From NCBI GenBank assembly GCA_001179505.1, contig CDMY01000510.1:290551-354449 (forward strand): 63,899 nucleotides of DNA, written 5' to 3'. Below are positions 9,736 through 59,600 of this stretch, piece after piece (the first letter of the stretch is position 1; each line of letters begins with the position of its first letter). A program made the translations under genes and the position numbers. The notes under the pieces are model-generated. The model ran no database searches. It had not been told where the DNA came from and saw only the letters and a program-made list of their open reading frames with translations. Source of the stretch: Vitrella brassicaformis CCMP3155 (lineage: Eukaryota > Protista > Chromerida).

Positions 9736-12700
9736 ATGCATTCGGTGTCTGCTGGAGCCCAGTTGGTAGGGCCGGCGGCAGCAGGGCCCTTTCTCTACTA
9801 TGAGTCACGTCTCGAAGACCTGTAAGACCAGGGAGGGAAAGGCAAACGAACAGAGGCTACACACAGGGACGGATCACACATGAGACGGTCTGATAATTGT
9901 TTTGGTGTCTGTCTGGTGTCCGTGTAGTGAGAAGCGCCGACAGCACCTGGATGAGAGGTATGCAGCCGCAGAAGCGACCGCATGCACTCGGCCATGCCCG
10001 TTCTGTCTGTTGCCATGTTTGCAGGCTTGTGCTGCGTCGCGAGGTGGTGTGTCGGGAGGAGGGCATCCGGGCAAAAATCATGCAGAAGAGGCTCGACAGG
10101 ATACAGGTGCGCACAGAGGCCGGTTGTCCGCTGGTGTTGTGCCATTCATTATCGATGTCACCTCACCGGCCATGCAGGCAGAGGAGCCCAAGATGAATGA
10201 CAGGAACCAGCGGCTGTTGAAGGAATTGCATCGGAAGTCACAGTCCATCAGCCCCAGGGGACGGGGCAGGTCGCCTTTCTTCGGGTATGCACAGCACAGC
10301 AGCGAGGGTGCGCTATACGCTTGCATGCATGTGCAATGGTTTGTTTGTTCGTTAACAAACAGTATATCGACGAGCCATGTGCTCAAAGACCAGAAGTCGC
10401 AGTTCCTCAACATCATACAGGTCAGTCAGTGAGATCAACATCATGGCAGGCGATGGATGCGCAGATATCCTCTTACCAATACTTGGCTCCGTGTGTGTGT
10501 GTCTGTGCAGTCCGCGTCATTATCGTGGCAGCGTCAGGTGGAGGAGGACTGCAGGAGACACATAAACAGGACACAGATACAAACAGAGGTAAGGCGGTAC
10601 ACACACACACACACACACAATGATCGTACTCTTCCGGTTCGTTCTCGGCAGCGTTTGAAGGTTCGTCGTCTGGAGCTGGATCGCTTCTGGACGGTGCAGC
10701 AGCAGCTCATGCAGGTAGGGAGGTATACAAACACTAGACAGACACAATGAAGGAAGGCATCAGACAGTCAGGTGAAGGCCTGCAATGCCTGTCCAATGGT
10801 ATACGTAGGAACTGCACTCAGCGAGGAAGGAGCTGGCCGACGAACAGGTGAGTGACGGACGACAGAGACGTGACAATATGAAAGGGCCTGCACGTCACTC
10901 ATTCATTCATACGCTTCTCTCTCCCTTCCGCTTGTTGTGCCAGCGGCGTTTGAACGACGAGGCCCGGCGTCGGTACCTGCAGCTGCTGGAGCAGAGGATG
11001 CAGCCGCCCCCACACGCCGCCACGGCACCCGCACCAAATGTCCAACACATATTCGTGCGACATGAGGTCAGTCAGCTGCACATGAGTGAGTTGACTGACA
11101 TGCAAGGGGGACATGATCGCTTCACGCGCCCGCCCTCTCGTGCCTCCCTCTCTATCTATCAGGGAACGAGCAGCTCCACTGTACGTTTCCTGGCCGGGGA
11201 GCTGACCAACGGTGCCTCCAATCCCTCCATCATATCTGTCTCTTCCCCCCGCCATGACGACCAATCCCGCTCGTCCGCCGGGCGGTCAGCGTCTCAGGCC
11301 CGTTTTCTCTCCATCGGCTCCCCGACGCCAGGCAGCCGCCTCAAGTGGCAAGAGCCACAGACACTCCCAGAGAGCATCCCAATGGCGAGGGAGAAAAGCG
11401 ATGAAGGGGATTATCAACACGACGAGGACTTGGAGACATCGCCAGAGTGCTCTCCCGGCTCTTACGACGGGCTGTCCAAGGTGTCGCGGCTGTCGCACAT
11501 CAGCAAGCTCTCCCGGGGTGCGCGGCGCTCAGCCAAGGCCAAGAAGGCTGCTGGGGCCAAGAGGTCGGCCCTTGCTGTCGACCAAAGGGCGAAGCTGTCT
11601 TCTGGATCACCCTCACCCACCTTCAGCCCTTCAGAATTCGAGGCCCAGTCACGGCTTGCGGCACATCAACCGGCAGCCGTCAGAGTGGAGGCCGAGAGAC
11701 CGCCCCCGAGACGTGTGGAGACGGAAGGACTGGCGCGTGCACCTGAGGCCCCATCTGCCCCGCCTCGCATAGTGAAGGCGATGTTGCCGGTGCGATCGCA
11801 GCTGCCTGCCGGGTCGTGGGGTGCCGAGGTGATGCTGCAGCTGGGGCTGGACCCCAGTGACCACGACGTGATTGGCGAGATAGGGCCGCACCCCAGGACA
11901 GCACCGGCAAGAGCATCGGCTGGGGTGAGTGGACGAAGCCATTTCGGTGTTTGGGTGTCATGGGCGATCGATGGGCGTGTCTCTGTGTGTGGTGGATGTG
12001 GGTGCAGGACATGGTGTTTGATGACGATGCCTCGCGCAGTGCGACGATCGCCACAGCATTGAAGAACAGAACATATAAGTGCGCCGAACAGAAGCCATTC
12101 CTTCCAACAAGAAAGCTTCACGTGCATACATAATTATGTGTGTTGGCATGTCTGTCTGTCTCAGTGCGCTTGAGAGGATGGAGCAGGACCTGCTGCATGA
12201 CCTCCACAGACTGGACGCCTTCCAAACGGACCTCCACATGCACATGCAGATGAACACCGCCCCACCGCCACTCTCTTCCGTCCACTCCCGCGCCCGCCAG
12301 CAGACAGACAGCCTGACGGTCCCCCTCCCTCCCCTCTCCTCCCACTCGACCCCCGCACTCCACAGACGCCCCTCGCCAATCGCCCAGCCGCTGGGCACCT
12401 CCCTGCCGCCATCCGAGCTGGGCACGGCCACGTCTCCGTTCCACACCGACAGGCAGACGACGGACAGGACAGCCAACCAGCCATCATTCCGCGAAGGACG
12501 AGGGCAGGCCCCGACTATCTCACCGCCGGTGAGTGGACAGCGGTGGGGGGAGCGGACGGGCGACTTCGGCTCTCCCAGCGAGACCAACAACAACACCATG
12601 AAGGTCGGCACTCTGCCCTCCATCATGGAGCACGGGGGCAGCTCTGGACAGCTCAACAAGTCAGCCGATGAGACTGCCACAGCCGCCCCTCCCCCGCCCC

Positions 12701-14271: not shown

Positions 14272-17200
14272 ATGCGGATGGTCTGCTTCCTTCTCATTGC
14301 ACTGCTGGGCTGCCCACCCTCTTCAAGTTTCCTCCTCGGCCATCTTGCCAGCTTCTTCCGGCACCACAACCACACGCAGCACACTGCTGCAGAGGAGCCC
14401 ATCAACCGCACAAACGTCCTTGCTGCTGTGAGCCGCCATGTGAATTGGGCTTTGCAGAGGCTGTGGTTCGATGACTCTCAAGGGGCCGAGGGGCTACAGG
14501 CAGACTCTGTGTCGGCTCAGAACAGCAGCGACGAGGACACGTCTACAGGTGAACACGCGTCCGAGGACCTATCTCTAAGGCCTGGCCATCAGGGCAGGAG
14601 GGCATTCGGAGCTGTGCCCTCTCTCCTGCAAATCGGACACAGAGGTGAGGAAGGCCATGCATGGAGGGACAAAACGATTGACTGACTCACTCATGTCATG
14701 TATGTGTGATACTACATTCTCTGTATGTAATGCTCAGCGAGGCGTGCTCGGGGATGGAGGAAGCTGGTGCAACAGACACACAGGCCTGATGTGACGGAGC
14801 GACAGTGCAGCAGCATGATGGACGAGGGGCTCACTTACGTTGGCCAGCGGGTGTTCGTCAGGCGGGGTGAGCGCCGCAATGGTGTGATCCGGTGGAAGAA
14901 CTACAAGAGGGTCAGCAGCCTGGATGCATCGCTGGTGCCGAATGACACGGCCAGGGTACCCATATTCTCTGCGGGGTGAGTTGAGTGAGAGAGGGAAAGA
15001 CAACCGACCGCTATTGGCCAAAGACTGTTAAATTCAGATTGGGTGTCACCTTCCCTCTTTCACCACACCACATTCCCTCAAGACACAGGCGGCATGTTTG
15101 TCTGTGCTGAGTACCCGAGACCTCGATGGGGACGAGGGCTGGACGATATTTGTGCTCTTCAGCACGCCCAGCCCCTCCTCCCTGGCATCAGTGTTACTGG
15201 ACAGGACCACGGGGCTCCAGGTGGTCGTGCAGAGGGATAAGGGCGAAGGGCAAGGGGGGCCGGTGCATTTTGGCTTGCGAGTGGGCAACGATTCTGTGGT
15301 GGTGCCCACATCCACTGACCTCCCTGTGATGCACGCTATCGTCATCCGGTTGGTGCCAGACCCAACAGACACACCGAAGCTCAGAGTATGAAGGGAAAAG
15401 AAGAGCGACAAACGCCACAAAGGCCAAGTAAGTGTGCTGCCGTTATTTCTGTAGGTGTGGGTCTATCGTGAGAGATCCCTCTTGACGGCAGAGGAGGGCG
15501 ACTGGATCACAGACAGCCGTGCGATTGATTCTCTCCACCGGCGGGGGCCATTCGTTGTCGGATGTGACCTTTACGGCCACCATTGCCTCCACGGTATGTC
15601 TTACACACAACACAGAAGAACGAGATAGTCCGCGGGATAGCGTCCACGTGATTCGATCAGGTTCCATGCGGTCGCTAATGGTCCGTTTCCGTCCCTTGAC
15701 TGGTGACCAAGTCATCAAAGGGATGGACGAAATGGACGCCATTCTAGGTATGTATGAGAATGAATATCGAAGAGAATTCGCGGGAAAGAGAGATTTTTGA
15801 CCTCTTTCTTTTCGTTGTCCTGTCCCTTTTCAGGCCGATCTGGTTACTGCGGCAACGGCGTTGTAGACGGAGGGGAGGAGTGCGACACGCCAGAAGATGA
15901 CGGGACGTGCTCCATCGGATGCAAAAGTGACAGACAGACGACACATGCAGAGACCCCAGATACATACACCAATGATATATATGGGGTTGTATCAGAGTTG
16001 TGTGAGCCATGGTTTGAGTACGAGGCCGTCCACCAGCTGAATCGGCACTACATAGAGCTTGAGGGCCCAAAAACGACGCCAACACGGATGCCGGGCGAGA
16101 CACGGACACTGCGGTGCCATCTCGGATACAGCCCCGGACATCGGCATACGCACACGCAGACGATCGTGTGCGAGCACGGCAGGTGGACGCCGCCGTCGCT
16201 CAACTGCAGACGTAGGCCTGAAGTCAGGCCAATCCATTCTCTCTGCGAGTCACCTCCCTTGTTGCTTGCAGGTGACTTCGCCTTGTCCTATCAGCTGATA
16301 GCTCCCCGTGACCTGCATGTCTCCAACCACACGCACGACAAGCGGCATGGCACAGTGGTGGAGGTGTCATGTCGCGAAGGGCTGCAGCTGGGCGAGGGCG
16401 TCCCGAGCGGCCCCCGGCACGTCAAGTGCATTGACGGAGAGTGGACCAGTCCGGGACTCCAATGCTTCGGTCAGTGAGCAGCTCTGACATCGATGACAGA
16501 CAGCACAGCACACACCAGATTCCTTTTTCTCAGCTTCGTGTGGGGGGTATCCTGACCTTGGTCCCCACTACCGCATCGAGGGTGGGTCAGGCAGCGTACG
16601 GCATGGTGCCGTGCGGACTGTGACGTGCAGAGAGCCCTACCGGTCGACATCAGGCGCTGACAGCGCTGTCGTGTACTGCTCACACGGCCGATGGACAGAG
16701 CTGGACCTCAGCTGCGAAGGTGAGTGAGTACCACGGATCAGCAATTGATTCCCATTGACGCTGCTTGTTCTGCAGCCCCGTGTCCGCGGTACGAGGCCCC
16801 GTCACCCCCTTGCGTGGTTGTCAACACGTCTCGGGCCAACCACACCAGCCGCCCGCCGAACATGCACCTGGGTGACGTGAGGCATCAGGGGGGCTGGATA
16901 GAGATCGGCTGTGACAGGCGGATCTCCGCAGCATCGTGTCACAAATTCGGCCAGGACTGCGCGGCCGACCCGCAGCGGATTTGGTGTTTGGGGGGCAGGT
17001 GGCAAAAACTGACGCTCTCATGCCACTGTAAGCCATCCGCTACTGCTGCATCCTAATGATGAGTCCTGTAGCCCCTCCCTCTGTGCGTCTGTCTGCAGAC
17101 AACTGTCCTGGTTTGGAGGACTTCAAGATCACCAACACCCGTGCGCGGCCGGACCTTTCTTGGCCCCGCTACACTCTCAAGTACGGCGGCAACCGCCATG

Positions 17201-20200
17201 GTGACGTGACTGACCTCACCTGCAGCGACGGATACGTGCCGGTCAACCGAGACATGACTGCTCAGCAGGTCCGGTGCTGGGAAGGCACTTATGACGTCAT
17301 TCGTCTAGACTGCAGGGGTCAGCTAATGAGAGAGATAGAGAGATAGAGAGAGAGAGAGAGGCAAAGGTGTGACGCAAGTGTGTACGCCATGTGTGTGGTG
17401 TGGTGTGGTGTGGTGTGCAGCCGAGTGTTTGTCGTCGGTGCCGCTTCCTCTGCGAGGCTACGTGCAGATCGGCAGTGACATCCGGCACGGCAGCCGTCGT
17501 GTGGTGCAGTGTGACGAGGGTGAGGGCTACGGCAGCATCATTCCCAACATGACGCAGGAGACGCTCTACTGCAGCGATGGATACTGGTCCCCACACTCAC
17601 TCCAATGCAGAGGTCGGTGGGTGACAAATTTCATGGATGCACGGACGTCTCAGTCGCACCGTCGTGTGGTCTCTGTGCTGTGTGCTGGCTGTGTGTGATT
17701 GATTTGTCTGTCTGCAGTGTGGTGTGAGAGTCAGTACCTGCAGGAAATTTGCCAACCTGAGCAGGACGAGTGCACAGGCCCCTACCGGTTCGAGCCGCCT
17801 CTCACCATCGCCGACACATATCCCTCGCAATTTTCAGTCGACGTGCGGTGAGGATTCTTCAGTGCTGCCTGCATGCCTGTATCTCACTGGGCTCGTGTGT
17901 CAGGTGCAATGACGCGGAGGGCTATGTGCCGACGTCCTTCGAGCCCACCGGCAACACCTCCCAGATTGACACGACAGAGACGCTCAGGTGTCTCGGCGAC
18001 CCTGCAAACCCTTCACACAGCTGGTCGGACCTCACTCTACAATGCGCTGGTGAGCAGATCGTGTAATGCGAGAGACAAAGTAAGTGATTTTGCTGTTGTG
18101 TCTTTTCTCCCAGCCCCCTGCGTGACGGATCACCTGCTGCGTCTCGGGCAGTCGATTGTGCAGCGGTGGATATACGCGTCAGAAGAAACGCGGGTCATCA
18201 ACGGCAGGCTCACTGGCGACCAGGAGATCCCTTCTTCCGTCTACCACAACGCCCGGGTGGAGCTGACGTGCGCTGAGGGTTTCAACAGCAGGTTCCTCAA
18301 TGGCAGTGGGTATCCGACGAGACAGAGGTCGCTGGTAGAGTGTCGGAACGGCCAGTGGACAGACGTCGAGCTGGAATGTGCCGGTGGGTGGGCTCGAAAG
18401 GGGGGCTCTTGTCTTGTCTGTCATGTGTGTGTCTCTCTCTATTGTGTGGTTGTTGCTGCCAGCCTCCTGCAAGGAGTATGAGTATCCCGGTGCTGGGTAT
18501 GAAGTGCAAGAGCTCCCCTACATTGGGGCCCTCTTCCACGGCGCTCGCCGGGTGCTGCGGTGCGACCCACTTGTGGCCTCCGCTGCTGGAAACACGACTG
18601 AGGATTCTCTGGTGTGCGTCAACGGGGTCTGGACACGAAAGACCATCACATGCAAAAGTAGGTCTGCCCCACGAACACACGAGAAACAGACAGCACATTG
18701 CTTGATGTCATATGCATTGACGTTGTGAGTGTGCAGGGAGCTGAGGTCCCTTCCCGACTCTGCTGGCTTCCCGCTATGTCGTTCGTCACGTCAAGGCTGG
18801 TGTGGGTGTGGACCCCCTCACGAGCCACCAGGCCGAGTTCCACATCAGCTGCCGTCGGCACTTCTCGCCATCGACAGGCGACAGCCCTTCCACAGTGCGG
18901 TGTGAGGACGGCAAGTGGACAGACCTTATTCTCATCTGCATGAGTAAGAAACTTGGACGGCTCTCACCCCGTCGGGCACATGAGGGAATGTGTGTGTGTA
19001 TGTGTCTGTGTCTATCTGTCACGCCAGGGGATTGCGAGAGAGCTCCTCACTTCTCCTCCAAGTACAGTGTGGAAAAGGTGTGGCCCCTGTCTGATGATGA
19101 AGGCGGCCCGAGCTGGCCACACGGCAGCCAGATCAACGTCACGTGCTCTTACCACCATGCACCCGAGTACCACCGTGAAGCGCATGCAGCTTCTTATGAG
19201 CTGCTGGAGTGTCTCGATGGATCCTTCGCCCACAGCATGCTTCGCTGCGGACGTGAGACTGCCCGCCCCACGTCTAACCAATGAATGCGAGACAGGCAAT
19301 AAGCGCTGCCCTGCCTGTGTGGTGTGAGTGTCTCTGCAGGTGTGTGTGCATCTGACGTGCCTGAGTCGCGGGGCTATGTGATAGACTCACCGGACAGACA
19401 TACACACTGGCCAATGGCCGGCGAGGTGGCCCCGGGTGTGTCGAGGAGAATCCGGTGTGACAATACCAAGAGATACTTCCCTGTGGAGGGAAGTGACCAT
19501 CAAAAGGCTGAGGAGGACACAATCCAATGCGTTGACGGCACCTGGACCGCCGCATCCATTTTCTGCCGACGTACGTGAGAAGGCAGACCTAACTGGACAC
19601 TTTGACTGTCAGTGCATATACGCTTACCGTTCCCTTCATCTTTCTGTGGTGAGGCTCTTGTCCCTTCCTTTATCTTGCTGCTGACGAGAACGCCCCTTCC
19701 CGGCCCAATACCCATTACGTCCCCTACCAATACGACGTGGCCAGCCCCCACAACACCACCGCCGACCTCTTCTCCACCGCTGCATTCGGTGAGGGCATCG
19801 ATGTTGCGACATTACCTCGTCATGGCTCCGAGGTGACCCTCAAGTGCCGTTCTTCTGACCTTCCTGGCGAGTCGTGGACACCAGCATATTCCGACAAGGA
19901 TGCAGCAGGTGTAACGGTGACGATCAGGTGCACTGATGGGGCATGGTCGCCCATCACGCTATCTGGCGCGAGTAAGGAAATATAAGAGACAAGACAGGTG
20001 AAGCGCGGTTGTCTCGCCAATGCGGTCGCTTGTTCAGAGGATTGCACTACGGATGATCTCAAGGAGAGGCTTGGACGACTGATGGCCATGCATGCCAGTG
20101 AAGACACTGCAGGCGAAGGAGGCGAGGCACTGGATACGGAGAAGTCCCATCGGTTGAGCATGGGGAGCGTGTCATCGTTGCCTGCGGGGACAATGCCTCC

Positions 20201-23200
20201 TACCCCGTCGACTGCCACCAAGAGACATCACTGCCATCGGATGAGAGAGAAGAGATCACGTGCACCAACGGCACGTTTGCACCCATAACCCTCTCTTGCA
20301 GCGGTACGCATATCGGCACAAACGGCGGGGCAAATTCATTGGCCATACATACATGTCTCCTGTTTCTCGTACAGCTGACTGCGACATGAGCAATCTCCGT
20401 CGGTGGCTTTCATCCTTCGATGGCTACTACGCGATCGACCACATCGCCCCTCCCTCCTTTGCGGACTCAGTTATGGTGCCCACAGGCACATGCGTCACGG
20501 TGGCGTGCGAGTTGGCACTGACGTCACCAGAGGGTGAGCTGGGGAAGGGCCGACAAACATACGCCATATGAGGGACGACTTCCCCCACGACGATTCGGTG
20601 CGACAACGGCCACTTCGAGACACTAGACCTCTTCTGTGCACGTGAGCACATCTTGCCAAGAGGAGCAGACACAAACACTATGCCTATTGTCATTCTGTTT
20701 CAGAGGAGTGCGGCCCTCTCGAGATCGATCCGCACCGCTATTCCGCCCTCCTGAAGGAGTCCATGCAGGCCGTGGGTCCCTCAAACCCCCCCGAGACGGA
20801 GATCCTGGTCAGGTGTCAGGATGGCTTCTCATCTGCTGGGGTCGAGGCTGACTCATACACAACGGTGGAGTGCAATGACGGCACGTGGTCGCCCCTGATG
20901 ATCAATTGCCAGCGTGAGACATGAAGGGGGGGGATGTGGGGATATGCAAAGTGCTCTTGTACCGGGCTGCCTGCAGAGGATTGTGGAGAGTTCTCATCAC
21001 TCGAGCCTGTTGCCGCTTACACGATTGAAGGCAGTGGAGTGCATCACGCGGCCACACGGTCGATATCGTGCGCTGAGGGCTATTCCACCGGTGCTGCGGT
21101 GTCGCCAACCCAAAGTGAGTCCCGCTGCGTCGACGGTGTCTGGTCGCCAACTGATCTTATCTGCTACGGTAGGCCAGATGATAGAAGGCATTGTGCACTC
21201 TGTGGCCGATTTCCTTCAGCTGACTGCGACGCGTTTGTGGGTGGTGCGCCGCTGGACGTCAGCCGCCTGGCACTCACCAAGGGCACACAACGTGAGATCC
21301 AGCCCAGAGCATGGCTACAGAATCACGGCTGTGCTTTGTATGGCGGCTGCAGGTCTAATGACCGAGCCTCAGCATCACGGCACTCGCCTGAAGCTACGGT
21401 GCAGGGAGGAGGTCTTGTACCTCTTTCAGGGCATGAGGGGCGCATCCATGGAGTTTGTCTGCACCGATGGTCGCTGGAACATCTCGGATGAGGAGAGATC
21501 CAACGTCGGCATCCTTAAGTGCAAAAGTAAGACAACTGAGTGGGTCAGTCAGGTGCCCTTCCGTCCAAGGGCAACCAACAAATGCATATGTGCCCTTAAT
21601 TGAATCTGTCCGTCCGCCAGAGGCCTGTCCCCCGATCCGAGAGGCCCTCGCTCTGTCGGAGGAGAAAGGCTATCGCATCCTCAACGACGAAGAGGAGAAA
21701 TGGAACTTCCACGGCACACAGAGGAGTGTCACCTGTCGAGACACATTCTCACCCGTAAACATATCGCAAACCGTACGAACCAGACCGTCCCTCGCTCAGC
21801 TGCTGTCTTGCATTTGGTCTGTCTGTCTGTGTTGTGTATAGGACGTGGTGGCTGGCACCAACATGACGATAGACATCATCACATGCGCAGAGGGCTCATG
21901 GATCGGACGACACATACACTGCAGAGGTCCGTGCCGTGCAGTGCATGCGCGTGTGTCCTGTCCAACAGCAATGGGTGTTCATCTCATCTTTGCTCCTCCC
22001 CTCCCTCCCCTGTGTCTCTCTGCCCTTGCAGCCAAATGTCCGGAGTACGAGCCACCAGACCATGATGCGTACCTTGTGACGAGCCACATACCGGCCAGTG
22101 AGGTCTACAAGCCAAAGAAAGGGAGGCTGGTCAGCCACGGAACCATGAGACGAGTCGAATGCAGACCGCACAGGTAAGTGTGGTGTGATCATGAAAAAGA
22201 AAGCTCGTGTCTTCGACTGCGCAAGGGAAGCGAAGCCATCCACTCACTGTCTCGTGCCTTTCTTCCAGAAATAAGGAGCACCACAGTATGGGTTACTTCG
22301 CTGCCAACGCTTCCCACCTGCCCGAGAACCCACACACGGGGGAGTACTTCGGCGTGGTGCAGTGCCTCGGCGGCACGTGGACAGCACTACCTATCAGATG
22401 CGAAAGTAAGAAGGCACACCACGCAGCCAGCACCTTCCATTCACACACTCAGCTAAGTGCATACTTGATTGATTCAGAGGTGTGCCCGACTTCGATTGAG
22501 GCTTTCCTGTTCGACCGCTGTGTGGCCGTCCACACGTCCGTCGGCCCTCTAGACACAGGCGAGCCGTGCTACCAGGCCGCAAGGGGCAATCACAAAGATA
22601 AACGCGAATGCGGCATCAAGCAGTGCGAGTCTCGCTCGCCCTATCGCATTTTGAGGACTATCGCCCAGCGTGACGAGAGCACCGAGAAGCTGGTGCCGCC
22701 AGACAAGCAGCGCTCAGCCTTGATGGCAAGAAAGGTATGAGAGTGGGCCTCACCGTGTTGTTATTACCTTCATTTATCCATCAGCCGGGCGACGTTCATC
22801 TGGTTGTGTGCGACGAGAAGTCTGGCTACGCCCCCGTCTACCCCAACGACGATGGGTTCTTGAGCGGCCACACAGCCTCCCATGATTCACTGGTCGCCAA
22901 GGTGCAATGCGAGGACGGTCACTGAAGGGGGCTGACATTCACATGCAAACGTAAGCGACAACAGGCAGCAAAGGGAAAAGGGCAGCCCCGTTTGGATCCC
23001 TGTGGCCTTTCAGGCGGCTGCAAAGGCTCGTTTGACATGTACAGCTATCCAGCACTGCGGCATCACCTTCTCTCTGCATCGCAGCCGTCACCAGTGAACT
23101 GCCAGAATCATCACGGTTTGGAGATCGCTGTCCCGCGCCAGCACGGCCACAGGAAGACGCCGCACAAACGCCATAAGCACTCTCCCTTCCTGGTCAAGCA

Positions 23201-24910
23201 GCACAGACTGCCGTCTCACGTGAATCAGAGGCGAAGGACCGGCACACGGAGACGCAAAGACGGCGGGAGCCAGTCATCCCTTCTACTCCGCAGCCCTGCC
23301 CCACTGCTTGTCCCCGTACTGCTGTCCAAGAGCAGCGTTGAGGCTTTGCCGAGTGGCGCATTCTTCCCTTTGATATTGAGCGGTCATACGAACCACAGCA
23401 GCTCACCCGTTGGGCTGGTCTTTCTCGCATCGGAGAGACATGATGGTTGGCCACGATGGCGGGTTCTTTCTCTGCCAGCAGATGCGGATGTGCCATTGAC
23501 GATCATTACGAATTCTGGTCGCTTCGAGGTCTCTCCGCTGCTTGGGGAACATGGGGCTGCTGTCCTGAGGTGTCATGTGCCTGCCAGACAGGACCATCAT
23601 GAGGGAGGCACCGATGGACTAGGCCGATTTATGCTTGAAGGCCGGGGCATCCCGCCACTGCTGCAGAAGCTGCAGTGCGAGGGAGGTCCGGGAGAGATCG
23701 CTGGCGAGAGAATTATCGAGGCGATAAGGCATGAGGGGTCTCTGGGAGCGCACTCTCTTCTTCCTGTGTCACTGCGCTGGCGGCCAAGAGAGGCTCACAA
23801 GGGGCACAAAACCTCGCTGTTGACTGGATGGGTGGTCAGGAGAGACGGTCTGACGTCGCATTTGCTGTCCTCGAGCACTGATTGACGATATCGAGGCTAT
23901 ACAAGACGCTCCATGCACTCCACAGACGCCGATCGCCTGCGTCTGGAGACCCCCCATGAGAATGGGAGGATTCACATTGGCCTCTGTCGATTGATGTTGT
24001 CGGCCAGCGGCGCTTCGACTGGCGTCCGGAGGGCAGCGGGCTGTTCAGCACTTCTCTGCTGCTCAGTTTGTGGCTTGCCTCTGTGTTGGCTGTCGATGAA
24101 GCGCTTGGGAGGGCTTACCAGACCCTGGTACACAAGAATTACCGCGGAAACCATGCAAATGGGACACTTACCGCACTGGAAATCAATGTTGAAAGGCGTT
24201 CGCTGCTGCTGAGAGAGATTCTCGGGCATGAGGCTCTTATTGGGATCGCCTTCCCACCAGCACCGACCGGTCCCGAGTCTTTATCTGCTCTTCAAGTCTC
24301 ATTCTCCCTTTCAAGTGAGTGTCTCTCACTAGTAAATGAAAGGATGGGTCACTCTCTGTCCACTGTATATATCGGTCGATACGCATCGCATCAGCGAGTC
24401 CGACCAACCCGACCGCGGACCGGAGTGTGTATAGCCACCAGCCTGTCTCGTTTGTGGAATTGAGTAACAGAGCCGGCCCATTGGACGATGCAAAGCTAGC
24501 CAAAAGGTGAGACAGGGAGACATGACATGAGCCAAAGATCCTTCCTTCGTATCATCCTTTTGTCTATGCATCATCCATACAGGAATGTTCTCGTTGGTAT
24601 GCCGTTCGGTGCGATGTGCGAGACATGGAAGCGTTATGGCCGCAACCTCATGCCAGCCGCACACAAATGGCGTATATGGGGCCCCGGCTGCTGCGATCCA
24701 ACCAACTGTTGGAAGGGGCGTGACGTGGCTAACAAGCGCGCCCTGTGTTCTCACCGCTTATACGGTGATGGGACTCATGTTGCCATCGAGAGTGGGGAGT
24801 TTCAATGGAGCGCCACGGCGGATGGACGGCCCTTTAATGTGACTACCAAGGACTCAAGTGTGGCTTATGCTATGTGTGTGGGCGGCAAATGGCACGTCCC
24901 TTCAGTATAG
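14272..24910 (+). CDS. Giant secreted protein: signal peptide, LamG/ConA-like domain, Myxococcus-type Cys-rich repeat, ~22 tandem Sushi/CCP-like modules; 3' half carries apparent nonsense/frame lesions
   Basis: Signal peptide MRMVCFLLIALLG; LamG-like WTIFVLF...FVVGC...GSMRSLMVRFRPLTGDQV (about 15040-15748); CGNGVVDGGEECD (about 15845-15885); then repeated exons of pattern xxC...Y...HG...C...C.(D/N)G.W...L.C from 15995 to about 24910. The true 3' end is uncertain. Confidence 0.8.
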
Positions 24911-25011
24911 ATGTCTGGAAGTGGAAACAGCATTGAGGAGACAGCAACGTGGCCAAGAGATGTCCGAGAGGCACATCGTTTGTCTACCCATCCATCCATC
25001 CATCCAGCTGT

Positions 25012-25651
25012 CTACAGTGGGGGCAGCCTGGGCATCGACTGGCTCACACTGATGGTGTTGCCCTCATCTCGCTCCCTCCCTGGCCTCTCCGGGCTCAGAC
25101 TGCGGCTCACAGCAGCAGTGCCACCCACACGACGACCGCGGGCAACCGCACCCCGCCTTCAGATCGACCACACAAGGAAAGGACGTCACTAGGAGCTCCT
25201 GAGTTATTGGTCTACGTCTCTTCTCTCTATCGTCACCTTTGTCTTTTGATGACGGACAGCTGCATTTGCAGCACACCCCGCTGGCTGGACGTCAGCATGG
25301 CAGACCGGTTGCGGGGCGTGCCGTTGTTCTGATCCACACACAGATGACATACAGACAGACAGACAGACAGACAGGAATGTGTGTCGTTTTGTGGTAGGGC
25401 ATTGCATTGCTGGTTGAGTGGTGCGTACGTCAGTGTATGCAGCAAGTTTGGGGTAGAAGAGGGGTGTCCTGGAACCGAGGAGCCTCTCCTGCGCCTGTCG
25501 ATAGATTTGTAGGGCATCAGCGGTTGGACGAGGTCTTTTGTGTGTTTCTGTGCATATGTGTCATGAGACCTGTTGCTGTATGGGCTTCCATATGGAGCAC
25601 TCCACCTCATGCTGGCCTGTCAGAACACAAACGGACACCACACTGTGTGCG

Positions 25652-25682
<31 letters not shown>

Positions 25683-28520
25683 CAAGTAACTGAGTACCTG
25701 GCTCTAGCGGCACGTCTACATATCCATAGCCCTCAATGCCGCACTTGCCGAACCCATCCTTGCTGTACACCTGACCACACCCAGCACCAACCAATGTGTG
25801 CACACTTTGCCCGCAGAAATGCACTTACCAGGAAGAACAGACGAGGCGGCGGGGACAGCGGCGTCTCCTCTGCACCCAATCAATGAACACACACACACAC
25901 ACACACACATTACCAGAGCTCATATTGGTTCGTCTGTGCGCGGTTGTCGCTTTGACCTCGATCAGCGGATTTCTCCAGGGCAGCGAAGTGCATTTCGATG
26001 GGCTGATGGATGACAGGTGACAAAGGAGAGCAGCACAGGTGGGTTTATGGCTTGCTATCGATGAATAAGGTGCGTGTTGGCTCGCTGACGTGTCCGAATG
26101 TGTATATGGGGTATCCAGGCGGTGCGAAGCACTGCGCTGTCGTGCTGCGGTAGATGCTGAGCAAGAGAGAGCAGGGATACACCAATGGCTGCCAGACGTT
26201 CTCCCTCGATCTGTTTGTTACAAGAGTGGGTCTATGTCGTCAGGCGCAATGTCTTGGCTCTCGTCATCCGTCCCGCCTATCTCAGCACGCCAACCTGACC
26301 AACACGCAACACATTTATGTGCATGATTGAATGGCCTGCCCGCCTGCTGACCATCATTCGGCGGCAAGATGCCCTCGATCGCTACCGAATACGACCTGAT
26401 GACAACCAAGCCAGTGAAGCGATTTGTTTATGTGTGTATGCCTTCGTGTCGGTTCATCTCTGACCTACCTGCCGAAGAGTAGGCTCCACGGCGATGGTGT
26501 GCCAGGCGGCCCTCTGACGCGATACCACTCAGGCGGGAACTCTGCACTCATGGATGGATGGATGGATGGGCAGACAAAAGCCAGGCAGAGAGACACATAC
26601 ATGAGCCCTTTCTCACTCCCTCCCTCCCTCTCTCCCTCCCTCCCTCCATTGCTCTGTAGGTGTACCTGACATCTCGTCGTTGAGGTATGATGTCGGCCAG
26701 TCCGTCACCGTCACGGCGGTGCTGGCATCATCAAACGTGTGGGAGGATGCAGGGGAGGAGCCCCACAACGCCTCACTCTGACCGGTAAAGTCATACACAC
26801 ACACATACATGCTTCTACCAGTGTTGTGTTCACTCGGATACACACCTTGGTGGTCGCTTCCTGCTTCAACACACCTGCATTAACACACGGTGGGCATCCA
26901 CACACACATCCCTCGCCCCCGATTCTCTCACCGTCAGCATCGTATCTGAGCAGCTGCCCGAAAACAGACCACACGCACTGGATGCCCCGCGGCGCGCCCA
27001 CAGACAGTGACGGCGCGGAGCCAAAGGGCCCTAAGGTGGCCCCCTCACTGGACCAGAATGGCTCCATGTCCGCCGCCAACACCGATGGCGGGGCGGCAAT
27101 GCGCAGAGGGGCGAATCCTGGACCGGCGAGGTTCTCGTACAGCGCGAGAGCCCTGAGAAAGTGATCAGACGGGCCGAAAATGAGGCAGGCTAAGTGCGTT
27201 TGCGTGTCTTGTGTGTGTGTGTAGTGGGACGATTACTGTTCTTCGAGTCTCCGTCTGTTCTTCTGCGCGTCGATGAAGCCCTCGATGGTGATGGCGTCCC
27301 CGCCCTCGACGAACACTTCTATGCGGACCTCATACTGGTGGCCCTGACCCTGGACAGAGGGAAAGAACGACCATCCACTGGTCGCCCTTTTCATTGCTGT
27401 TGCCAATTGAACTGTTCACCCCAGGCAGGGAGAATGTGGCGGACTTGCCGCTCTCGGTCGATGGGAAGCGAGGCTGCAATACACAAACAGCACACAGCAT
27501 GGATGCCTCTGTTGCTGTTGGGGCTGGATGGCTGTCTGTGAGTCACCCACCGTGACTTCGAGCAGTGTCGTCCGTTTCTGTGTGGCCCCACCGAGGGCCG
27601 ACGGCGCCACGCCCCGGGGCGAGTCGCCCAGGCCTCCAGCCCCACCGGCCTCCAGCCTATGGGCCGCCAACTGACACAGCAGCACCTCATGCGCATCACC
27701 ACTGATGGAGTGGGGAAAGGGAGGAAAAGGCAGAACGACAGAATATGGGATGAATCTCTCTGTGTCTTGTGGATCTACTTGTCCTCCTTGATGCTGCCCA
27801 TGATGAGCATGGACTCCTTGTGGCCATCGCGGAGCCGGGACTTCTGCGGCTGGCTCCGGCTCCGCAAACCCACCTCCTCAAACGCTATATCCGGCACCCT
27901 GCACACACACGCACACACACACACAAATGCGGACTCACCAATCGTGCTCATCCAATGTGCGTGTGGCTGTGTCCTCACTTTGCCTTTGCCGATGTGGTGA
28001 TAGGTTGCAGCACGAAGGCAGCTAGTGCTCGCACGGCGCCTTCGTGTTGCCCGACGATGTCACGGTCGACGTACGTGAACAGCACCTGAATGAAACAAGG
28101 CACGCAGGCAGGACAGTGAGTGAGAAGAGAAGCGCATCTGATTGCCCGTGGTTTGCACCTTTCCTGCAGCCGCGTGCTGTTGGCTCGTGGTGGTGGCCGC
28201 ATATGCGCTCGAGGGAGCCCTGGACGAACAAAGGAAGAACACATCCAGACAACGAACGACAGCCGATCTCTGCATGAAACTCACGCCGGGCTGAGGACTT
28301 TCTCCTGCCACCGGAACTCCGCCACGTGCACCTCAGCAGCACCCTCATACTGCTCGCCTCCCGCTGCTTTCTCCCCTCCTGGTTGACCACCACCATTTGT
28401 CGGCGGGAGGGACGGGTGGCTGGCGGCGAGTGGCAGATCTCCTCCATCGGTCTTTCTCAGCAGTGTGGCACGGATCTTGAGCGCCTCAAGCGGCTCATCC
28501 AAGTGATAGAGGCCGCTCAT
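25012..28520 (-). CDS. MKS1: Meckel syndrome type 1 protein homolog (B9/C2 domain, ciliary transition zone)
   Basis: N-term MSGLYHLDEPLEALKIRATLLR, FRWQEKVLS, VLFTYVD, MLIMG; B9 domain STTAQC...FGHPIEMHF...PRLFFLVYSKDGFGKCGIEGYGYVDVPLEPGQHEVECSIWKP. The long N-terminal extension matches MKS1 rather than B9D1/B9D2. The last exon is chosen by frame (ends SQSMPRLPPL-TAG). Confidence 0.85.
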
Positions 28521-28565
28521 CCCGTCGGGCACACACAAATTTACTAATTTACTTGCGAGCCGCCG

Positions 28566-30250
28566 ATGTGTGGAGCTGATTTGGCGGATATGCGTGAGGA
28601 GGTTGCGGCTGACCCCGATGAGGCGCGGCGTCTCTGCACCTACCGGCCGCCAGCAGCTCCTGGCGTGACGGCCGGCCCGCCACAGCTGGGCGGTGGGCGG
28701 TCGGGGATCGAAGTGCTGCAGCTGGCATTCGAGAAGCACAAAGAGCAGACCGATAAGGTACAAGATCTGACGGATAAGCACATGGACTCGATTTGACGCA
28801 CTCTCTGGGGTTTGTGTGTCCAGGAGGTGCGCAGCATGAAGGAGCGCTACGACAAGGAGATGAATAGCATGAGGGCGCTGCTCGAGCAGCAACAGGAGGT
28901 GCGCAGATCAGACGACCACAATCTGGGCGTTGCGCACGGGTGGATATCTGTGTATGGCCACGCACGCAGGAGATGCGCAGCATGAGGGAGCGCCACGCCA
29001 AGATGGCGCAGGTCACGCGGCAGGTGAATTGATGACCCATCCGCAGGCCAAGACGCTGCAGGCGTTGCATGTGCGTATGTATGTGTGCGCAGGAGTCTGC
29101 AGAGAGGGAGGCTCGCCTCCGTTCTTGGCTGGAGCGTGAGGTCGCTGCCCGCCAGGCACTCGCGCAAGAAGTGCAGGTGAGAAAGGGGCAAGGCGACCGA
29201 AGGCCAAAAGGCGTATGCTTCTGGTTGCGTTGCGTTGTGTGTGTCAGGAGCAGCGCGAGTATTTGGTTGAGGAGGTGTCAATTGACGTGCGCACAGAGTT
29301 CAGCGACCAGATCAAGGACATGAAGCAGCAGATGAGCCAGAAAATAGAGTCGTTCAGCGCCAAAATCGACAGCTCACCTTCGGTAAGCTGAAGCTGGACA
29401 CAAATCTCATGTGTTCAGGCACTCACTGACGTGTGCTGTGCCATGCCTGCCTCTTGCATGCAGCATGCGGGTGTGGAGCTCATGGCGGCCTCTCACTACA
29501 TCTGCACAGCCGGTCAGCAGGTTAGGAACAGACAGACTGACAGACGAAAATCCTTGCCTTTACGGCGTATGTGTTTGTGTGCGCAGTTTGTGCGTAGTCC
29601 TCGCTCTTTGGCAGCTATCGCGCGCTGCGTGACTGGCTGCGTCGCTATACGTACATCAACACGATGAAGCTACTCTACAAGTGACGCATCACGCACACAG
29701 ACACCTGTGCAGCTGATATGCCTTTCATGCATTTAGGTCATCCCGTGATGGTTTCAAGTATGCCACCTTCTTCGACAAGACGCTCGGCGCTCGTCGGTCC
29801 CTCTTCCTCATCCGAGACGGCCCCGCCCACCTCTTCGGACTCACCGTCGACGGCCCCCTCACACCGCCCCTCAACCCCACACGGTCCAAGCACACCCCCT
29901 GCGCCATATCCTTGTACAGCATCAGCGGGGCGTATGACGCGCCCACCAAGATACCCCTGCCAGTAGAGGGGCAGAAGGTGGCGGTCGCTGGGCGGGAGGG
30001 GGCGTTGACGGGCAGCGATGGGCAGCCACACGGCAAGGTGTGCATCACCGGCCGGAATGAAGCAGCTCTCTGGCTGGGTTATGCTGACCCTGGCCCTGCT
30101 GCCGACCTCAGGACGTGCCACATGTGGGTAAACAAGGCCCACTTGCCGGCCGGATATCGAGGGGCGCTGGTGGGAACGAAAAACAACGGCACACTGGCGA
30201 CAGACAAGAACTTCACAGCGACGGAAATCGAAGTGTGGGCACTGACGTGA
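28566..30250 (+). CDS. Coiled-coil + C-terminal TLDc domain protein (paralog of the 4455-6538 TLDc domain)
   Basis: Phase-0 coiled-coil exons (28824, 28970, 29092, 29248), then YRALRDWL...MKLLYK|SSRDGF...LFLIRDG...YSISGAYDAPTKIPLP...ATDKNFTATEIEVWALT-TGA at 30248-30250. Confidence 0.85.
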
Positions 30251-33600: not shown

Positions 33601-35238
33601 CTTTTCTTGGTCGGGNNNNNNNNNNNNNNNNNNNNNNNNNNNNNNNNNNNNNNNNNNNNNNNNNNNNNNNNNNNNNNNNNNNNNNNNNNNNNNNNNNNNN
33701 NNNNNNNNNNNNNNNNNNNNNNNNNNNNNNNNNNNNNNNNNNNNNNNNNNNNNNNNNNNNNNNNNNNNNNNNNNNNNNNNNNNNNNNNNNNNNNNNNNNN
33801 NNNNNNNNNNNNNNNNNNNNNNNNNNNNNNNNNNNNNNNNNNNNNNNNNNNNNNNNNNNNNNNNNNNNNNNNNNNNNNNNNNNNNNNNNNNNNNNNNNNN
33901 NNNNNNNNNNNNNNNCGGGGGGGGGGGTGGTAGTTCATCCACTGACTTTGATGCGATTGCTCTGACCGACAAGGATGAAGTTGCCGTCGCCCAGGAACTC
34001 AAGAGCCCTGATCTCGGACTGAGTGAAGTCCGACCTGCACACACACATGGATGGATGGATGTCTACAAGGCATGGATGTGCGTGACTTCCCTCACTCGGC
34101 GAGGCTGGTGTGGGTGTGGGATCTCTCAGCGGTAGTGGTGTTTGAGTTGAAGTTGAACAGCTTGACGAGCCTGTCCTGGCCCGCCGATGCGATCATGCGG
34201 AACTCGTCGTGGATGGCCACACACTTGACCGCTTGGCTGTGCGCCACGAACAGCTGCTCCTCGCGACCCTCACGCACATCCCACCACTGCAGTGCACACA
34301 CAATAGATATGAGATGGGGGCTCATGTGTGTGTATGTGTATGGGTCAACCCCTGTGTGTGTGTGTGTCTGACCGAGCAGTATCCGTCCTGGAATCCGGCT
34401 ACGAGCTGGTTGGTCCTGTTGAGGCGCACGTGCTGCACGGGGGAGGTGCTGCCGGTGCGACGCAATGTGCGGACCAACGTCCGCTTATCCAAATCCCACA
34501 CCTGTACAATCAATGATATACACACATGCAGCTGGATGGATGGATGGATGGACAGAGGCAGATGCTGAATGACCTTGACGGTGCCGTCCATGCCCCCCGA
34601 CACGACGTAGGGCAGGTCGCTGTTTGGCTGTGCGGCGATGCACGTGACGGCCGCCTTGTGGCTGCACGAACCCCTGTCGTTAGAAGATATCATGCTCGAA
34701 CAATTGTCTGACACACATACACATCATGACACACATCCGGGGAAGGAAGCGAATACAATGAATGGTATGGTGTGTATTGCGTTGCGTACGGCTGATGTCG
34801 TATACGCGGACGCCGCCGGTTTCCAGCCCCACAAACAGAATGTTGCCAGTGTGGTGGAAGGCCAAACCCGTCACGCCGCCCTTGCTCGTCCCATACTCCT
34901 GCAAAGACAGAGAATGCAGCCAACGAACGTGTCGGGAAAGCTCTCTCTCTCTGACCCTCCATTTTGTTTGTGTGGTGAGGTCCCAGATGTCGATATCGCC
35001 GCGTTCAGAGCCGAGCGCCGCTAGGGTGCCCTGCAGGTTCAAACACCCCACCGGCCGGGCCACATCCACCGACACACGAAACTCACCTGTATATATAGCA
35101 ACGGACAAAGAGAGCCACAAATGCAGTGTGCCATGCAGTGAGTGAGTTTGCCGTTGTGTGCGCCTTACAGCCCTTGGACACGTGCAGATACAGCGACGGG
35201 CAGGCCATCCGCTCAGACGCGTCGTTTACATCGCTCAT
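30669..35238 (-). CDS. KATNB1: Katanin p80 WD40-containing subunit B1 homolog (WD40 repeats, low-complexity linker, con80 C-terminal domain); interrupted by an assembly gap
   Basis: WD40 exons 34090-35090 (GDIDIWDL, VSGGMDGTVKVWDL, FVAHSQAVKCVAIH...IASAGQDRLVKLF); C-terminus IMDRHAVVMEAMNRR...VGTVVDYF...PVDISHEERLARCTACYDVL matches the p80 DISREERLHKC motif. Confidence 0.85.
33616..33915. other. Assembly gap (300 N) inside the katanin p80 gene
   Basis: Run of n from 33616 to 33915, flanked by a poly-G/poly-Pro tract. Confidence 1.
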
Positions 35239-56648: not shown

Positions 56649-59600
56649 TCATGGCGCATCCGCACGCCCGCGCGGCGAGGGCGAGATGGCTGACGGGCTG
56701 CTGGAGGTGCTGGGCGCCTGGCTCCTGTGTGCAGCCGACTGCTCGGCGTCCATCTGGCGCTTCATCGACTCGCGCAGCTGCTCGATGCACTGAAACACCG
56801 CCGTCTGCACGCCCTGCAGGCGGGTCTGCTCCTCGGTCAGGTCCTCCAGGAACACAAACAGGTCGTTGAGCGACATAGAGCCCACACGACACACCGAAAA
56901 CCTGATGGATAAATGGATAAATTGATGGATTGATGGATGGATGGATGGATGGACACACGACACACACGTGTGTGTGGGGGTGGGGAATGGTCGCTCACCT
57001 GTGTGTGAGCTTGTTGATCTGTTCCTCCAGTGTTTTGACGCGCTCGGTTTTGGCGGCCAGGTCCTGGTTGAGGGCCGAGATGGCGCCTTCCTCCTGTTGT
57101 GTGTGGGCGTGAGCTTGTGAGGGGAGCGAGAAGTGTCCGAGAGAGAGGTGGTCGATGTGCGTGTCGGGGTCACAGCAGCCGCGGTCGTGTGATGCGGTGT
57201 CGGTAGTGCTGCTGCTCGGGGTGCCCTTGTCGTCATCCTCGCCCTTGACCTGACGGCTGCAGTGTGGTGGATGGAAGAAACAAAGGAACACCGATATGGC
57301 TGGCTGCGTCGGTTGGCTGTGATGGACACACGTACCTCCACTTGTGTGTAGAGTGTTGCTGTGTGATCTGTTTGCTGCTGCCGTCCTTGGTGAGCTCGTC
57401 GACAGTCCTCTGCAGCTGCTTGATGGTCCAGTCCTTGGAAGCACACTCGGAGGTCAGCTGCGCCACCCTCAACTCATACTCACCCAACCTGCTTACACAG
57501 ATGCCATCACACACACACACACATGGACGTGTGGTGAACAGCCAGGCGGCTGTGAGTGTGGTTGCTCACTTGTTTTGTGCAGCCATGTCGTTGGATGTGG
57601 AGCCGTCGCAGCGGCCAGGCGACACCGCCTCAGCCAGCAATGCGTCGCCGCTCTGATTGATGGCACACGGTGGATTGCCGTACGGCCACCATGCTGCTGT
57701 CTGTGTCCGTGTGGTGTGTGTGCCGACTTACGTCAGTGCCATGTGGTCTGTTGCCTGAGTCCATGATGCCATGCAGCCGCTGATCCAGATAGCCCACAGC
57801 CTAAACAACACACACACATAGACACCATCCAGTGCTACGGCTCTCTCTGTTCTTTCTCTCTCCGCCTGCCTCGCACTCCACTGACCTCTTCCAGGACGGC
57901 GCCGCTGGTTGGCGACATGAAGCTCCGCCCCGACACCCCCCCATCCCCACTGCCACTGTCGGTGCTTTGGTGGTACGGCGTGCCGCACTCGAGTCGGTTG
58001 GTGGGACTCATGTGGTCGGCCAGGTTGAGTCGAATGGGGTTGCCCACACTGCCCGGGGCCGGGCTGTGGCGGCTCGCCAGGCTCTCGCTCGACACGCAGC
58101 CGCGCGGGTCCATCACGGGAGGGCGGTGGATGCCTGTGCCGCCGCCCCACCCCTCATCACTCGGACTTGACTCGGGTGGCACGGGGAAGCCGACACTGCC
58201 CGACGAGTAGAGGCTGTAGAAGGTGTCGCACCCACTGCCGCTGGGAGGGCTGGCCTTGGGCGACGGCGTGACCATCCCCACACTGCGATCGGTCGGGCTG
58301 GGGGCCGCCCAGATGGCGGCCGTCTGCTGGTTGGCGGACGGCAGCTGCAGGCTCGACGGGGAGGGGGCCCCCTGCCCACCCCAGATGTCGGCCTGCGGCG
58401 TGGTGGCTGTGGGGGTGGGTGTGAAGCCGGGAGGGGGGAAGACCGGACCCACCGTGCTTGCCGGGCTGCCTGCGGGGCTGCTGCTGTCGTGCTGCGATTG
58501 AGAGCTGCCCGTCGTCTTGTGCGAGGGGCTCATGAGCGGCTTCTTGCCGGCCGCCTGATCCCCCCTCACACCGCGGGACGACCGCTTCTCGCTGCCGCTG
58601 GGTGCGGGTGTGTCGTCAGGTCCGAGTGCTGGGTGGTGTGTGTAGGTGGTGACGGCGTGGTTGAACGTGAAGACCTCCTTGCCCTTCTCCAGGTTCATGA
58701 CGTACCAGTTCTTGGCCTCCTTGGCAGGGTCCAGCTGCGGCGGGCTGGGGAGGTTGAGGCAGGGCGTCTCGGGGTTGCCCACCGTGTACGCGATGGCGCG
58801 CGTCGCCCGGATGACCATCCATAGGGGCACGTGCCCGATGGGGATCCAAACACGAGACACGAACTGGCCCGAAGCCGCCGCCCAGCAGATCTTGAATCGC
58901 ACGCGCATCTTGCCGTCCATGGTGGTCTCGGACGGCCCGCCCTTGTCGTGCTCCTTCCGGTAGCTGGCGCACAGCAGCCGGGAGCCTCTGCTCTCGTTGC
59001 GGTTGATCAGGATGGTGTTCATGAGCAGCGGGGCGTAGCTGGGTGACGCCAGGCCGTCGGTCGAGAGACGCCCCCAGAGTGCCACGATGCCGCAGAGGAA
59101 GCACCGTCTCACGAGGATGAGATGCAGGCCCAGCCGGATGTCGCGCGAGAGCTGGCGGTACCACTCGCCCACGTCGTGTCGAAGGCGTCTCAGGCCGTGG
59201 TAGGGGAAGTTGCGCAGCCGGGCGCAGTCGTCGCACGTCTCGAGAGCGAGCGGGCCGCTCTCGTAGAAGTCGACCACATCGTCCAGGGGGATCATCACTG
59301 CCGCCTGGGACGCGTCAACCTGCACACACCAAGCGACACGCACAGGCGTGGTATTGATATCCACACGCGCGTGTATGGCTTGCGCATGGCATGAGCATCA
59401 TCAGACGCACCTTGAACTCTCTGTCGATAATGGCGGCCGCCTCGCCCGCCAGCGCCTCCACGTTGAGGTGAGAGTAGCGCACCGCCATGGCGCCAAGCAC
59501 CACCACCTTGACGACATAGGGCAGCCTGCCGCTGACCTCGTCGACATGGCCGCGCAGCACCTCCACGGCCCTGTGCTCGAAGCTGCGGGGGTCGAGTGTG

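Follow-up and report, generated by a model that had tools for sequence, protein, structure and literature searches.

Premature stop codons in coding sequence that otherwise looks intact are known from several described systems. They occur in duplicated (unprocessed) pseudogenes of extracellular-protein families, in genes subject to nonsense-associated altered splicing, in selenoprotein genes, where UGA is decoded as selenocysteine (Sec), and in filamentous ascomycetes, which at the sexual stage repair stops by adenosine-to-inosine (A-to-I) editing. UGA is the leakiest of the eukaryotic stop codons and is misread chiefly as Trp, Cys or Arg, and the contexts known for high readthrough are a stop followed by C or by CUAG. 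Stop repair in fungi mostly converts UAG to UGG, and both ADAR-type and fungal editing disfavour a G as the 5' neighbour of the edited base. The present study concerns a giant Sushi-repeat gene in Vitrella brassicaformis CCMP3155 (assembly GCA_001179505.1, 72.7 Mb in 1064 contigs). It is situated in the last 63.9 kb of contig CDMY01000510.1 (C510; positions 290,551-354,449, 63,899 nucleotides), a stretch referred to below as the window and used for all positions given without a contig. The second half of the gene contains three in-frame TGA codons, one frameshift and one lost disulfide Cys, and the gene is likely, in our judgement, to be a young copy in decay, belonging to an expanded birth-and-death family of giant Sushi-repeat genes.

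The giant Sushi gene and its lesions

The gene was delimited from an open-frame map, a table of splice sites and phases and a collinear alignment with five paralog loci, and homology searches were made exon by exon. From 5' to 3' it encodes a signal-peptide-like start, an N-terminal region, a Cys-rich motif CGNG..EECD (positioned near 15850), 21 divergent Sushi-like modules spanning 15996-22950, a spacer and a C-terminal WGPGCCDPTNCW domain. The hydrophobic N-terminus alone points to ATG 14272 as the putative start codon. The modules show the four Cys, the C..G.W motif and the profile match that define the Sushi/CCP domain. Pfam Sushi (PF00084) matched pieces of the window with E=1.1e-10 and 2e-4 and matched the paralog models as well, recognising some pieces only, as many modules have diverged too far to reach a score of their own. 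Modules 1 and 2 lie in one common exon and modules 7 and 18-21 are each interrupted by one intron, while every remaining module forms one exon that starts with ag/NN NNN TGY (the slash marks the exon border) and ends four bases past the fourth Cys at a phase-1 GT. This exon start, pointed out in a preliminary description of the stretch, holds for most module exons, and most of them are symmetric (phase 1-1). The shortest intron in the gene is 56 nucleotides (nt). The features on which the argument depends are:

14272-24910, + strand: the whole Sushi gene, as inferred from the three lines of analysis above
15996-18657, + strand: modules 1-9, with no stop and no frameshift and with the four Cys present in each
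18737-18943, + strand: exon of module 10 (207 nt, phase 1-1), whose third codon is TGA 18742-18744 on the first Cys, Cys1 (cag/GG AGC TGA)
19654-19971, + strand: exon of module 13, with the fourth Cys, Cys4, changed to Gly (GGC 19965-19967)
20038-20303, + strand: exon of module 14, 266 nt and thus not a multiple of three, with different opening and closing frames
20375-20641, + strand: exon of module 15 (267 nt), with in-frame TGA 20569-20571
20704-22405, + strand: modules 16-20, intact, modules 18-20 each with one intron
22785-22950, + strand: second exon of module 21 (phase 0-to-1), with TGA 22923-22925 on the conserved Trp of C.DG.W
24524-24910, + strand: exon of the C-terminal domain, open and conserved, with 128 codons (24524-24907) followed by TAG 24908-24910

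These five independent damaging changes, four of them disabling, comprise nonsense codons, a frameshift and the loss of a disulfide Cys; all are confined to modules 10-21 and none is found in modules 1-9. The stop in module 10 takes a position that is Cys in all four of the five paralogs aligning there (C253, C708, C954 and C243), and apart from this codon the exon encodes a complete module, in frame. An AG at 18744-18745 offers an alternative acceptor, in phase and open, with an exon start at 18746; its use would bypass the stop and lose Cys1. The Cys4 replaced by Gly in module 13 is Cys in five of five paralogs. When module 14 was aligned by eye, its opening frame corresponded to the start of the paralog modules and its closing frame to their end, and the switch between the two falls between ~20102 and ~20135, within a purine-rich GGCGAAGGAGGCGAGG tract. 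The TGA of module 15 is located neither at a Cys nor at a Trp site but at a variable one, occupied in the five paralogs by Leu, Leu, Gln, Lys and His, and the stretch around it is uninterrupted coding sequence in all of these. The last TGA, in module 21, replaces a Trp present in five of five paralogs. With the bases that follow, the three stops read TGA-GGT, TGA-GGG and TGA-AGG.

The stops on Cys1 and on the conserved Trp, the GGC codon, a frame break near 20100 and the acceptor at 18745 had all been listed in the preliminary description and were recovered here, and the intactness of modules 16-20, likewise claimed there, is borne out by the splice and phase table and the alignment. Its proposal that the stops land exactly on Cys and Trp codons is correct for 18742 and 22923; the third TGA, at the variable site 20569, had been overlooked.

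Ordinary point mutations striking the second half of the C510 copy would be sufficient to produce this pattern. TGY would have changed to TGA at Cys1 of module 10 and TGG to TGA at the Trp of module 21, module 15 would have acquired its TGA by another one-step change, TGC would have become GGC at Cys4 of module 13, and module 14 would have lost 1 nt or gained 2 nt within the purine-rich tract. The exons align codon for codon with the five paralog loci, and the disabling lesions are found at positions that are coding in these relatives, as in a pseudogene. No single recoding mechanism could mend all five lesions. A full-length product is presumably no longer made, and the lesion-free modules 1-9 could still give rise to a truncated secreted protein. 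A rough estimate from the three nonsense changes corresponds to ~1-2% neutral divergence and suggests that the decay is recent; since the downstream modules and the C-terminal domain remain conserved, either the decay would be recent or the region would still be read.

Some further candidate defects, and one candidate remedy, were rejected. An apparent frame fault at module 7 disappears with the acceptor at 17718, a phase-1 site that supplies Cys1 and has a good pyrimidine tract. A reading in which Cys1 of module 18 is changed to Trp (AWHSP at 21265) was discarded because that reading is intron and the true first exon, which is used in the public protein model CEM19318.1 and matches the paralogs, carries Cys1. 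A 39-nt mini-intron at 20534-20572 would remove TGA 20569, but this sequence is coding in the paralogs and is shorter than the shortest intron of the gene.

The preliminary description also counted TAG 24908 among the lesions, which we reject as unproven. This codon closes the C-terminal domain, which is conserved in the paralogs as well as in Chromera and Colpodella proteins, and the frames of C243 and C253 end nearby, 2 codons and ~11 codons beyond the equivalent position, respectively; the frame of C385 runs on through one further small exon. Judging from these alignments, TAG 24908 is probably the natural stop of the gene. The domain itself, with the motif WGPGCCDPTNCW...LYGxGT, gave no Pfam match and is an unnamed domain marking giant Sushi proteins of Vitrella, Chromera and Colpodella.

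The paralog family and the placement of the stops

Searches with exon 10 and with paralog proteins revealed at least seven collinear loci in the genome (C510, C253, C266, C708, C954, C243 and C385), whose modules are 30-50% identical to those of the C510 gene when compared one by one. All frames of the paralog loci were scanned with a module profile, with stops written as X. In-frame stops are found at three of the seven loci (C510, C253 and C385), and damage outside the window was located as follows:

C253, 102001-122000, minus strand: paralog whose module 10 contains a TAG and whose module 18 has a TGA exactly in place of its second Cys, Cys2, a residue kept in C266
C385, about 315386-315517, minus strand: module with a TGA exactly on the conserved Trp (14484-14615 in reverse-complement coordinates, TGA at 14592)
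C954, about 58150-58345 (region coordinates 10153-10345): module 9, where the frame changes just before the third Cys, Cys3, by an apparent frameshift or small duplication

In C253, Cys4 of module 9 is in addition changed to Phe and Cys3 of module 16 to Trp, and from its sequence this locus is probably a second decaying copy. The scan showed no stop within the matched modules of C266 and C708, and the lone X in C243 sits in a weak match and is probably spurious. When C253 was compared with C266, the ratio of nonsynonymous to synonymous divergence (dN/dS) was 0.21 upstream and 0.26 downstream of the C253 TAG, values that do not separate recent decay from constraint, with dS saturated. In a genome-wide search with Pfam Sushi, 33 of 34 matches were without a stop, the sole exception being the TAG in C253; in-frame stops thus cluster in the giant Sushi family and are not general to the assembly or to Sushi modules.

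To judge the position of the stops, mutation paths were counted over the 1771 codons of the modules and C-terminal domain of the gene, and the ranges given reflect the assumed transition bias and GC-to-AT bias. TGY and TGG are the source of 26-41% of the one-step routes to any stop and of 65-75% of those to TGA, and the probability that at least two of three stops fall on Cys or Trp is 0.17-0.36. The placement emphasised in the preliminary description is therefore not beyond chance. The stops would lie on such codons because no codons one step from TGA are commoner in a Cys-rich protein than TGY and TGG, and the Cys and Trp columns are also those that a reader lines up by eye.

Several observations weigh against a decaying gene. 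At sites invariant among the paralogs, the C510 gene deviates at 27 of 119 (23%) upstream of the first stop and at 20 of 116 (17%) downstream of it (p=0.33), a weak comparison since the nearest paralogs are 30-50% identical with saturated dS and a divergence of ~1-2% is too small to show. At a distance of 2 kb beyond the last TGA, the C-terminal domain has kept both its open frame and its conservation. All four disabling lesions fall after module 9, which is not significant (rough estimate, P about 0.08). Finally, the stops are TGA in three of three cases in the gene (P about 0.03) and in five of six in the family (P about 0.015), against an expected share of 0.32, both figures being post hoc and from small numbers. 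This excess of TGA is weak and unexplained and may be a small-sample effect. The five TGAs of the family all precede G or AG (TGAG or TGAAG).

Exon skipping, assembly error and recoding

The only public model found at the locus is CEM19318.1 (563 amino acids (aa), 20386-22925, + strand). It begins at an internal ATG in module 15 (20386), leaves this module at GT 20534 to join module 16, avoiding TGA 20569, and terminates at TGA 22923. When the portion of exon 10 downstream of the TGA was run with HMMER against 1.84 billion cluster representatives, no protein containing this exon was retrieved; the best identity was 46% over 22 residues, compared with the 100% expected of a model holding it, and 56 matches mapped back to the DNA gave one model from the locus. 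Word searches of public proteins showed no protein of 98-313 aa matching exons 10-11, and those with CEM19318.1, exons 10-11 and CEL97097.1 gave no further protein for the locus. Hence no public protein spanning any of its lesions was found in these searches. At C253 the gene is divided into CEL97097.1, which ends at the TAG, and CEL97096.1, which starts just past the TAG and ends at the TGA. At C385, CEM08641.1 (2513 aa) reaches the C-terminus only by leaving the damaged module at a GT that lies within its Cys2 codon and rejoining at the next module. According to the genome paper, the models were made with Augustus using RNA-seq intron hints, and genes having in-frame stops were annotated as pseudogenes (PMC4501334).

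Such models bear on the first alternative, a live gene with dead modules, in which the symmetric exons would be skipped, or entered by alternative sites, and a shorter protein would keep the C-terminal domain. The exons of modules 10 and 15 are both phase 1-1, dropping the 266-nt exon 14 restores the frame, and in-phase bypass sites exist as exon starts at 18746 and 20127 and as the donor at 20534 used by the public model. The intact C-terminal domain and the lack of excess divergence downstream are in agreement with this explanation, and so is the C385 model, which reaches its C-terminus only by splicing around the module with the TGA on Trp. However, the bypasses were chosen by a gene-prediction program, and in-phase AG and GT are common by chance in GC-rich sequence. 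The exon with TGA 22923, being phase 0-to-1, can be removed only along with the preceding exon, and the splice sites of the damaged exons are as good as those of their neighbours, so that nothing marks them for skipping. We regard this alternative as unlikely.

Rather less probable still is that the lesions are absent from the organism, being either errors of assembly or base calling or the mark of a single null allele at a locus that is polymorphic. The genome was assembled with velvet from short reads, and the gene is repetitive and modular. However, the HiSeq reads were SGA-corrected and PCR-free data were used to correct the bases of the assembly in three ICORN rounds (PMC4501334), and an assembly treated in this way would be expected to contain far fewer errors than five in ~4.2 kb. 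The modules are just 30-50% identical to each other and to those of the paralogs, making repeat collapse or mis-joining unlikely, and the 33 stop-free Sushi matches of 34 in the genome speak against a general source of error. The assembly has a single copy of the 4.6 kb in which all the lesions lie, no undamaged twin or haplotig of the locus was found, and no second strain was found in the metagenomes of the Joint Genome Institute (JGI). The preliminary description had considered a young pseudogene, a null allele or an assembly error together as the most probable causes; a young decaying paralog is favoured here, and an assembly error is unlikely because five lesions lie at one single-copy locus that passed three ICORN rounds.

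A third explanation is that UGA is decoded, either by readthrough with near-cognate tRNA-Cys and tRNA-Trp, restoring the residues at 18742 and 22923, or by insertion of Sec, so that the gene would be leaky and not dead. It draws on the overrepresentation of TGA described above (three of three stops in the gene and five of six in the family, P about 0.015-0.03), on the four of five family TGAs that fall on Cys or Trp codons, and on the presence of a tRNA-Sec gene in the genome:

C270:128036-128121, minus strand: tRNA-Sec gene (Rfam RF01852, 71.6 bits compared with a cut-off of 47 bits; anticodon TCA according to ARAGORN)

With this gene present, it is very likely that Vitrella has selenoproteins. 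However, an Rfam search for the selenocysteine insertion sequence (SECIS) gave no family match at the gathering score across the window and none at E up to 5 in 18000-29000. A UGA standing in for Cys, as in selenoproteins, is found at 18742, but neither the variable site 20569 nor the Trp site 22923 is a meaningful place for Sec. Readthrough would call for a leaky context and a single open frame onwards; the bases following the stops are G, G and A, none of them a known leaky context, and the frame past the first TGA is interrupted again, by a frameshift and by two further stops. Neither the frameshift of module 14 nor the change of Cys4 to Gly can be repaired by readthrough, and the mutation paths already account for the stops on Cys and Trp. 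Decoding of UGA in this gene is thus highly improbable. The same applies, if slightly less strongly, to a broader proposal for the family, that UGAs replacing Cys or Trp are decoded by near-cognate tRNA-Cys or tRNA-Trp in partly functional genes, or that damaged symmetric exons are spliced out, which would account for the intact downstream modules and C-terminal domain.

Stage-specific A-to-I editing of UGA to UGG, switching on the full-length protein as in sexual-stage ascomycetes, would return Trp at 22923, but it would also place Trp at 18742, where the aligned paralogs have a disulfide Cys, and at 20569, where the residues are mixed, would leave the frameshift and GGC 19965 beyond repair and would act on an A preceded by G, the neighbour disfavoured by the known enzymes, and it is extremely improbable here. 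Regulated A-to-I repair, which the preliminary description had raised as a possible novelty for chromerids, thus finds, like the Sec insertion and readthrough also mentioned there, no support in the variable-site TGA, the Cys site that would become Trp, the frameshift, the SECIS search or the non-leaky contexts.

Gene setting, annotation and comparison with described systems

The base composition of the window is uniform, at ~58% GC. Its single assembly gap, an N-run at 33616-33915 (300 bases, a scaffold gap), is distant from the Sushi gene. Microsatellites occur in the introns and flanks of the gene, with (GT)n and (GA)n tracts at 25640-25700 and 17340-17370.

In a repeat protein rich in Cys, random mutation is expected to place stops in the Cys and Trp columns, and their position there is no sign of recoding. 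The public annotation conceals the lesions, both in CEM19318.1, by an internal ATG and by splicing past one TGA, and in CEM08641.1, by splicing around the stop, and because of this the Sushi domain counts and 'expansions' of chromerids include damaged copies. If a leaky UGA or the skipping of dead modules were true after all, the locus would be an example of how damage to individual modules is tolerated by giant modular surface proteins.

Among the described systems, the repair of stops in ascomycetes by A-to-I editing resembles this locus in that stops interrupt a reading frame that otherwise looks intact, and one of the stops here occupies a Trp codon. The C510 gene differs in that its stops are UGA, compared with mostly UAG, in that one replaces a Cys codon and one a variable codon, and in that a frameshift and a missense loss of Cys are also present. 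With selenoprotein genes it shares a UGA, at 18742, that aligns with Cys in the paralogs, in a genome with tRNA-Sec; it differs in giving no SECIS match, in having its other UGAs aligned with Trp and with a variable residue, and in that the Cys concerned belongs to a structural Sushi disulfide and not to a redox site. The likeness to nonsense-associated altered splicing consists in the arrangement of one module per phase 1-1 exon, so that the loss of an exon keeps the frame, and in the public model at C385 that splices around the stop-bearing module. At C510, however, one of the damaged exons is asymmetric.

The duplicated (unprocessed) pseudogenes of extracellular-protein families offer the remaining comparison. 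Compared with these, the C510 gene is only lightly decayed, its downstream modules and C-terminal domain being as conserved as its upstream half, and its first nine modules are lesion-free, so that a truncated product is possible. Like them it is an intron-bearing paralog within a multigene family and has several independent disabling changes, its domains are still recognisable, its automatic annotation is fragmented, and other members of its family are damaged as well.

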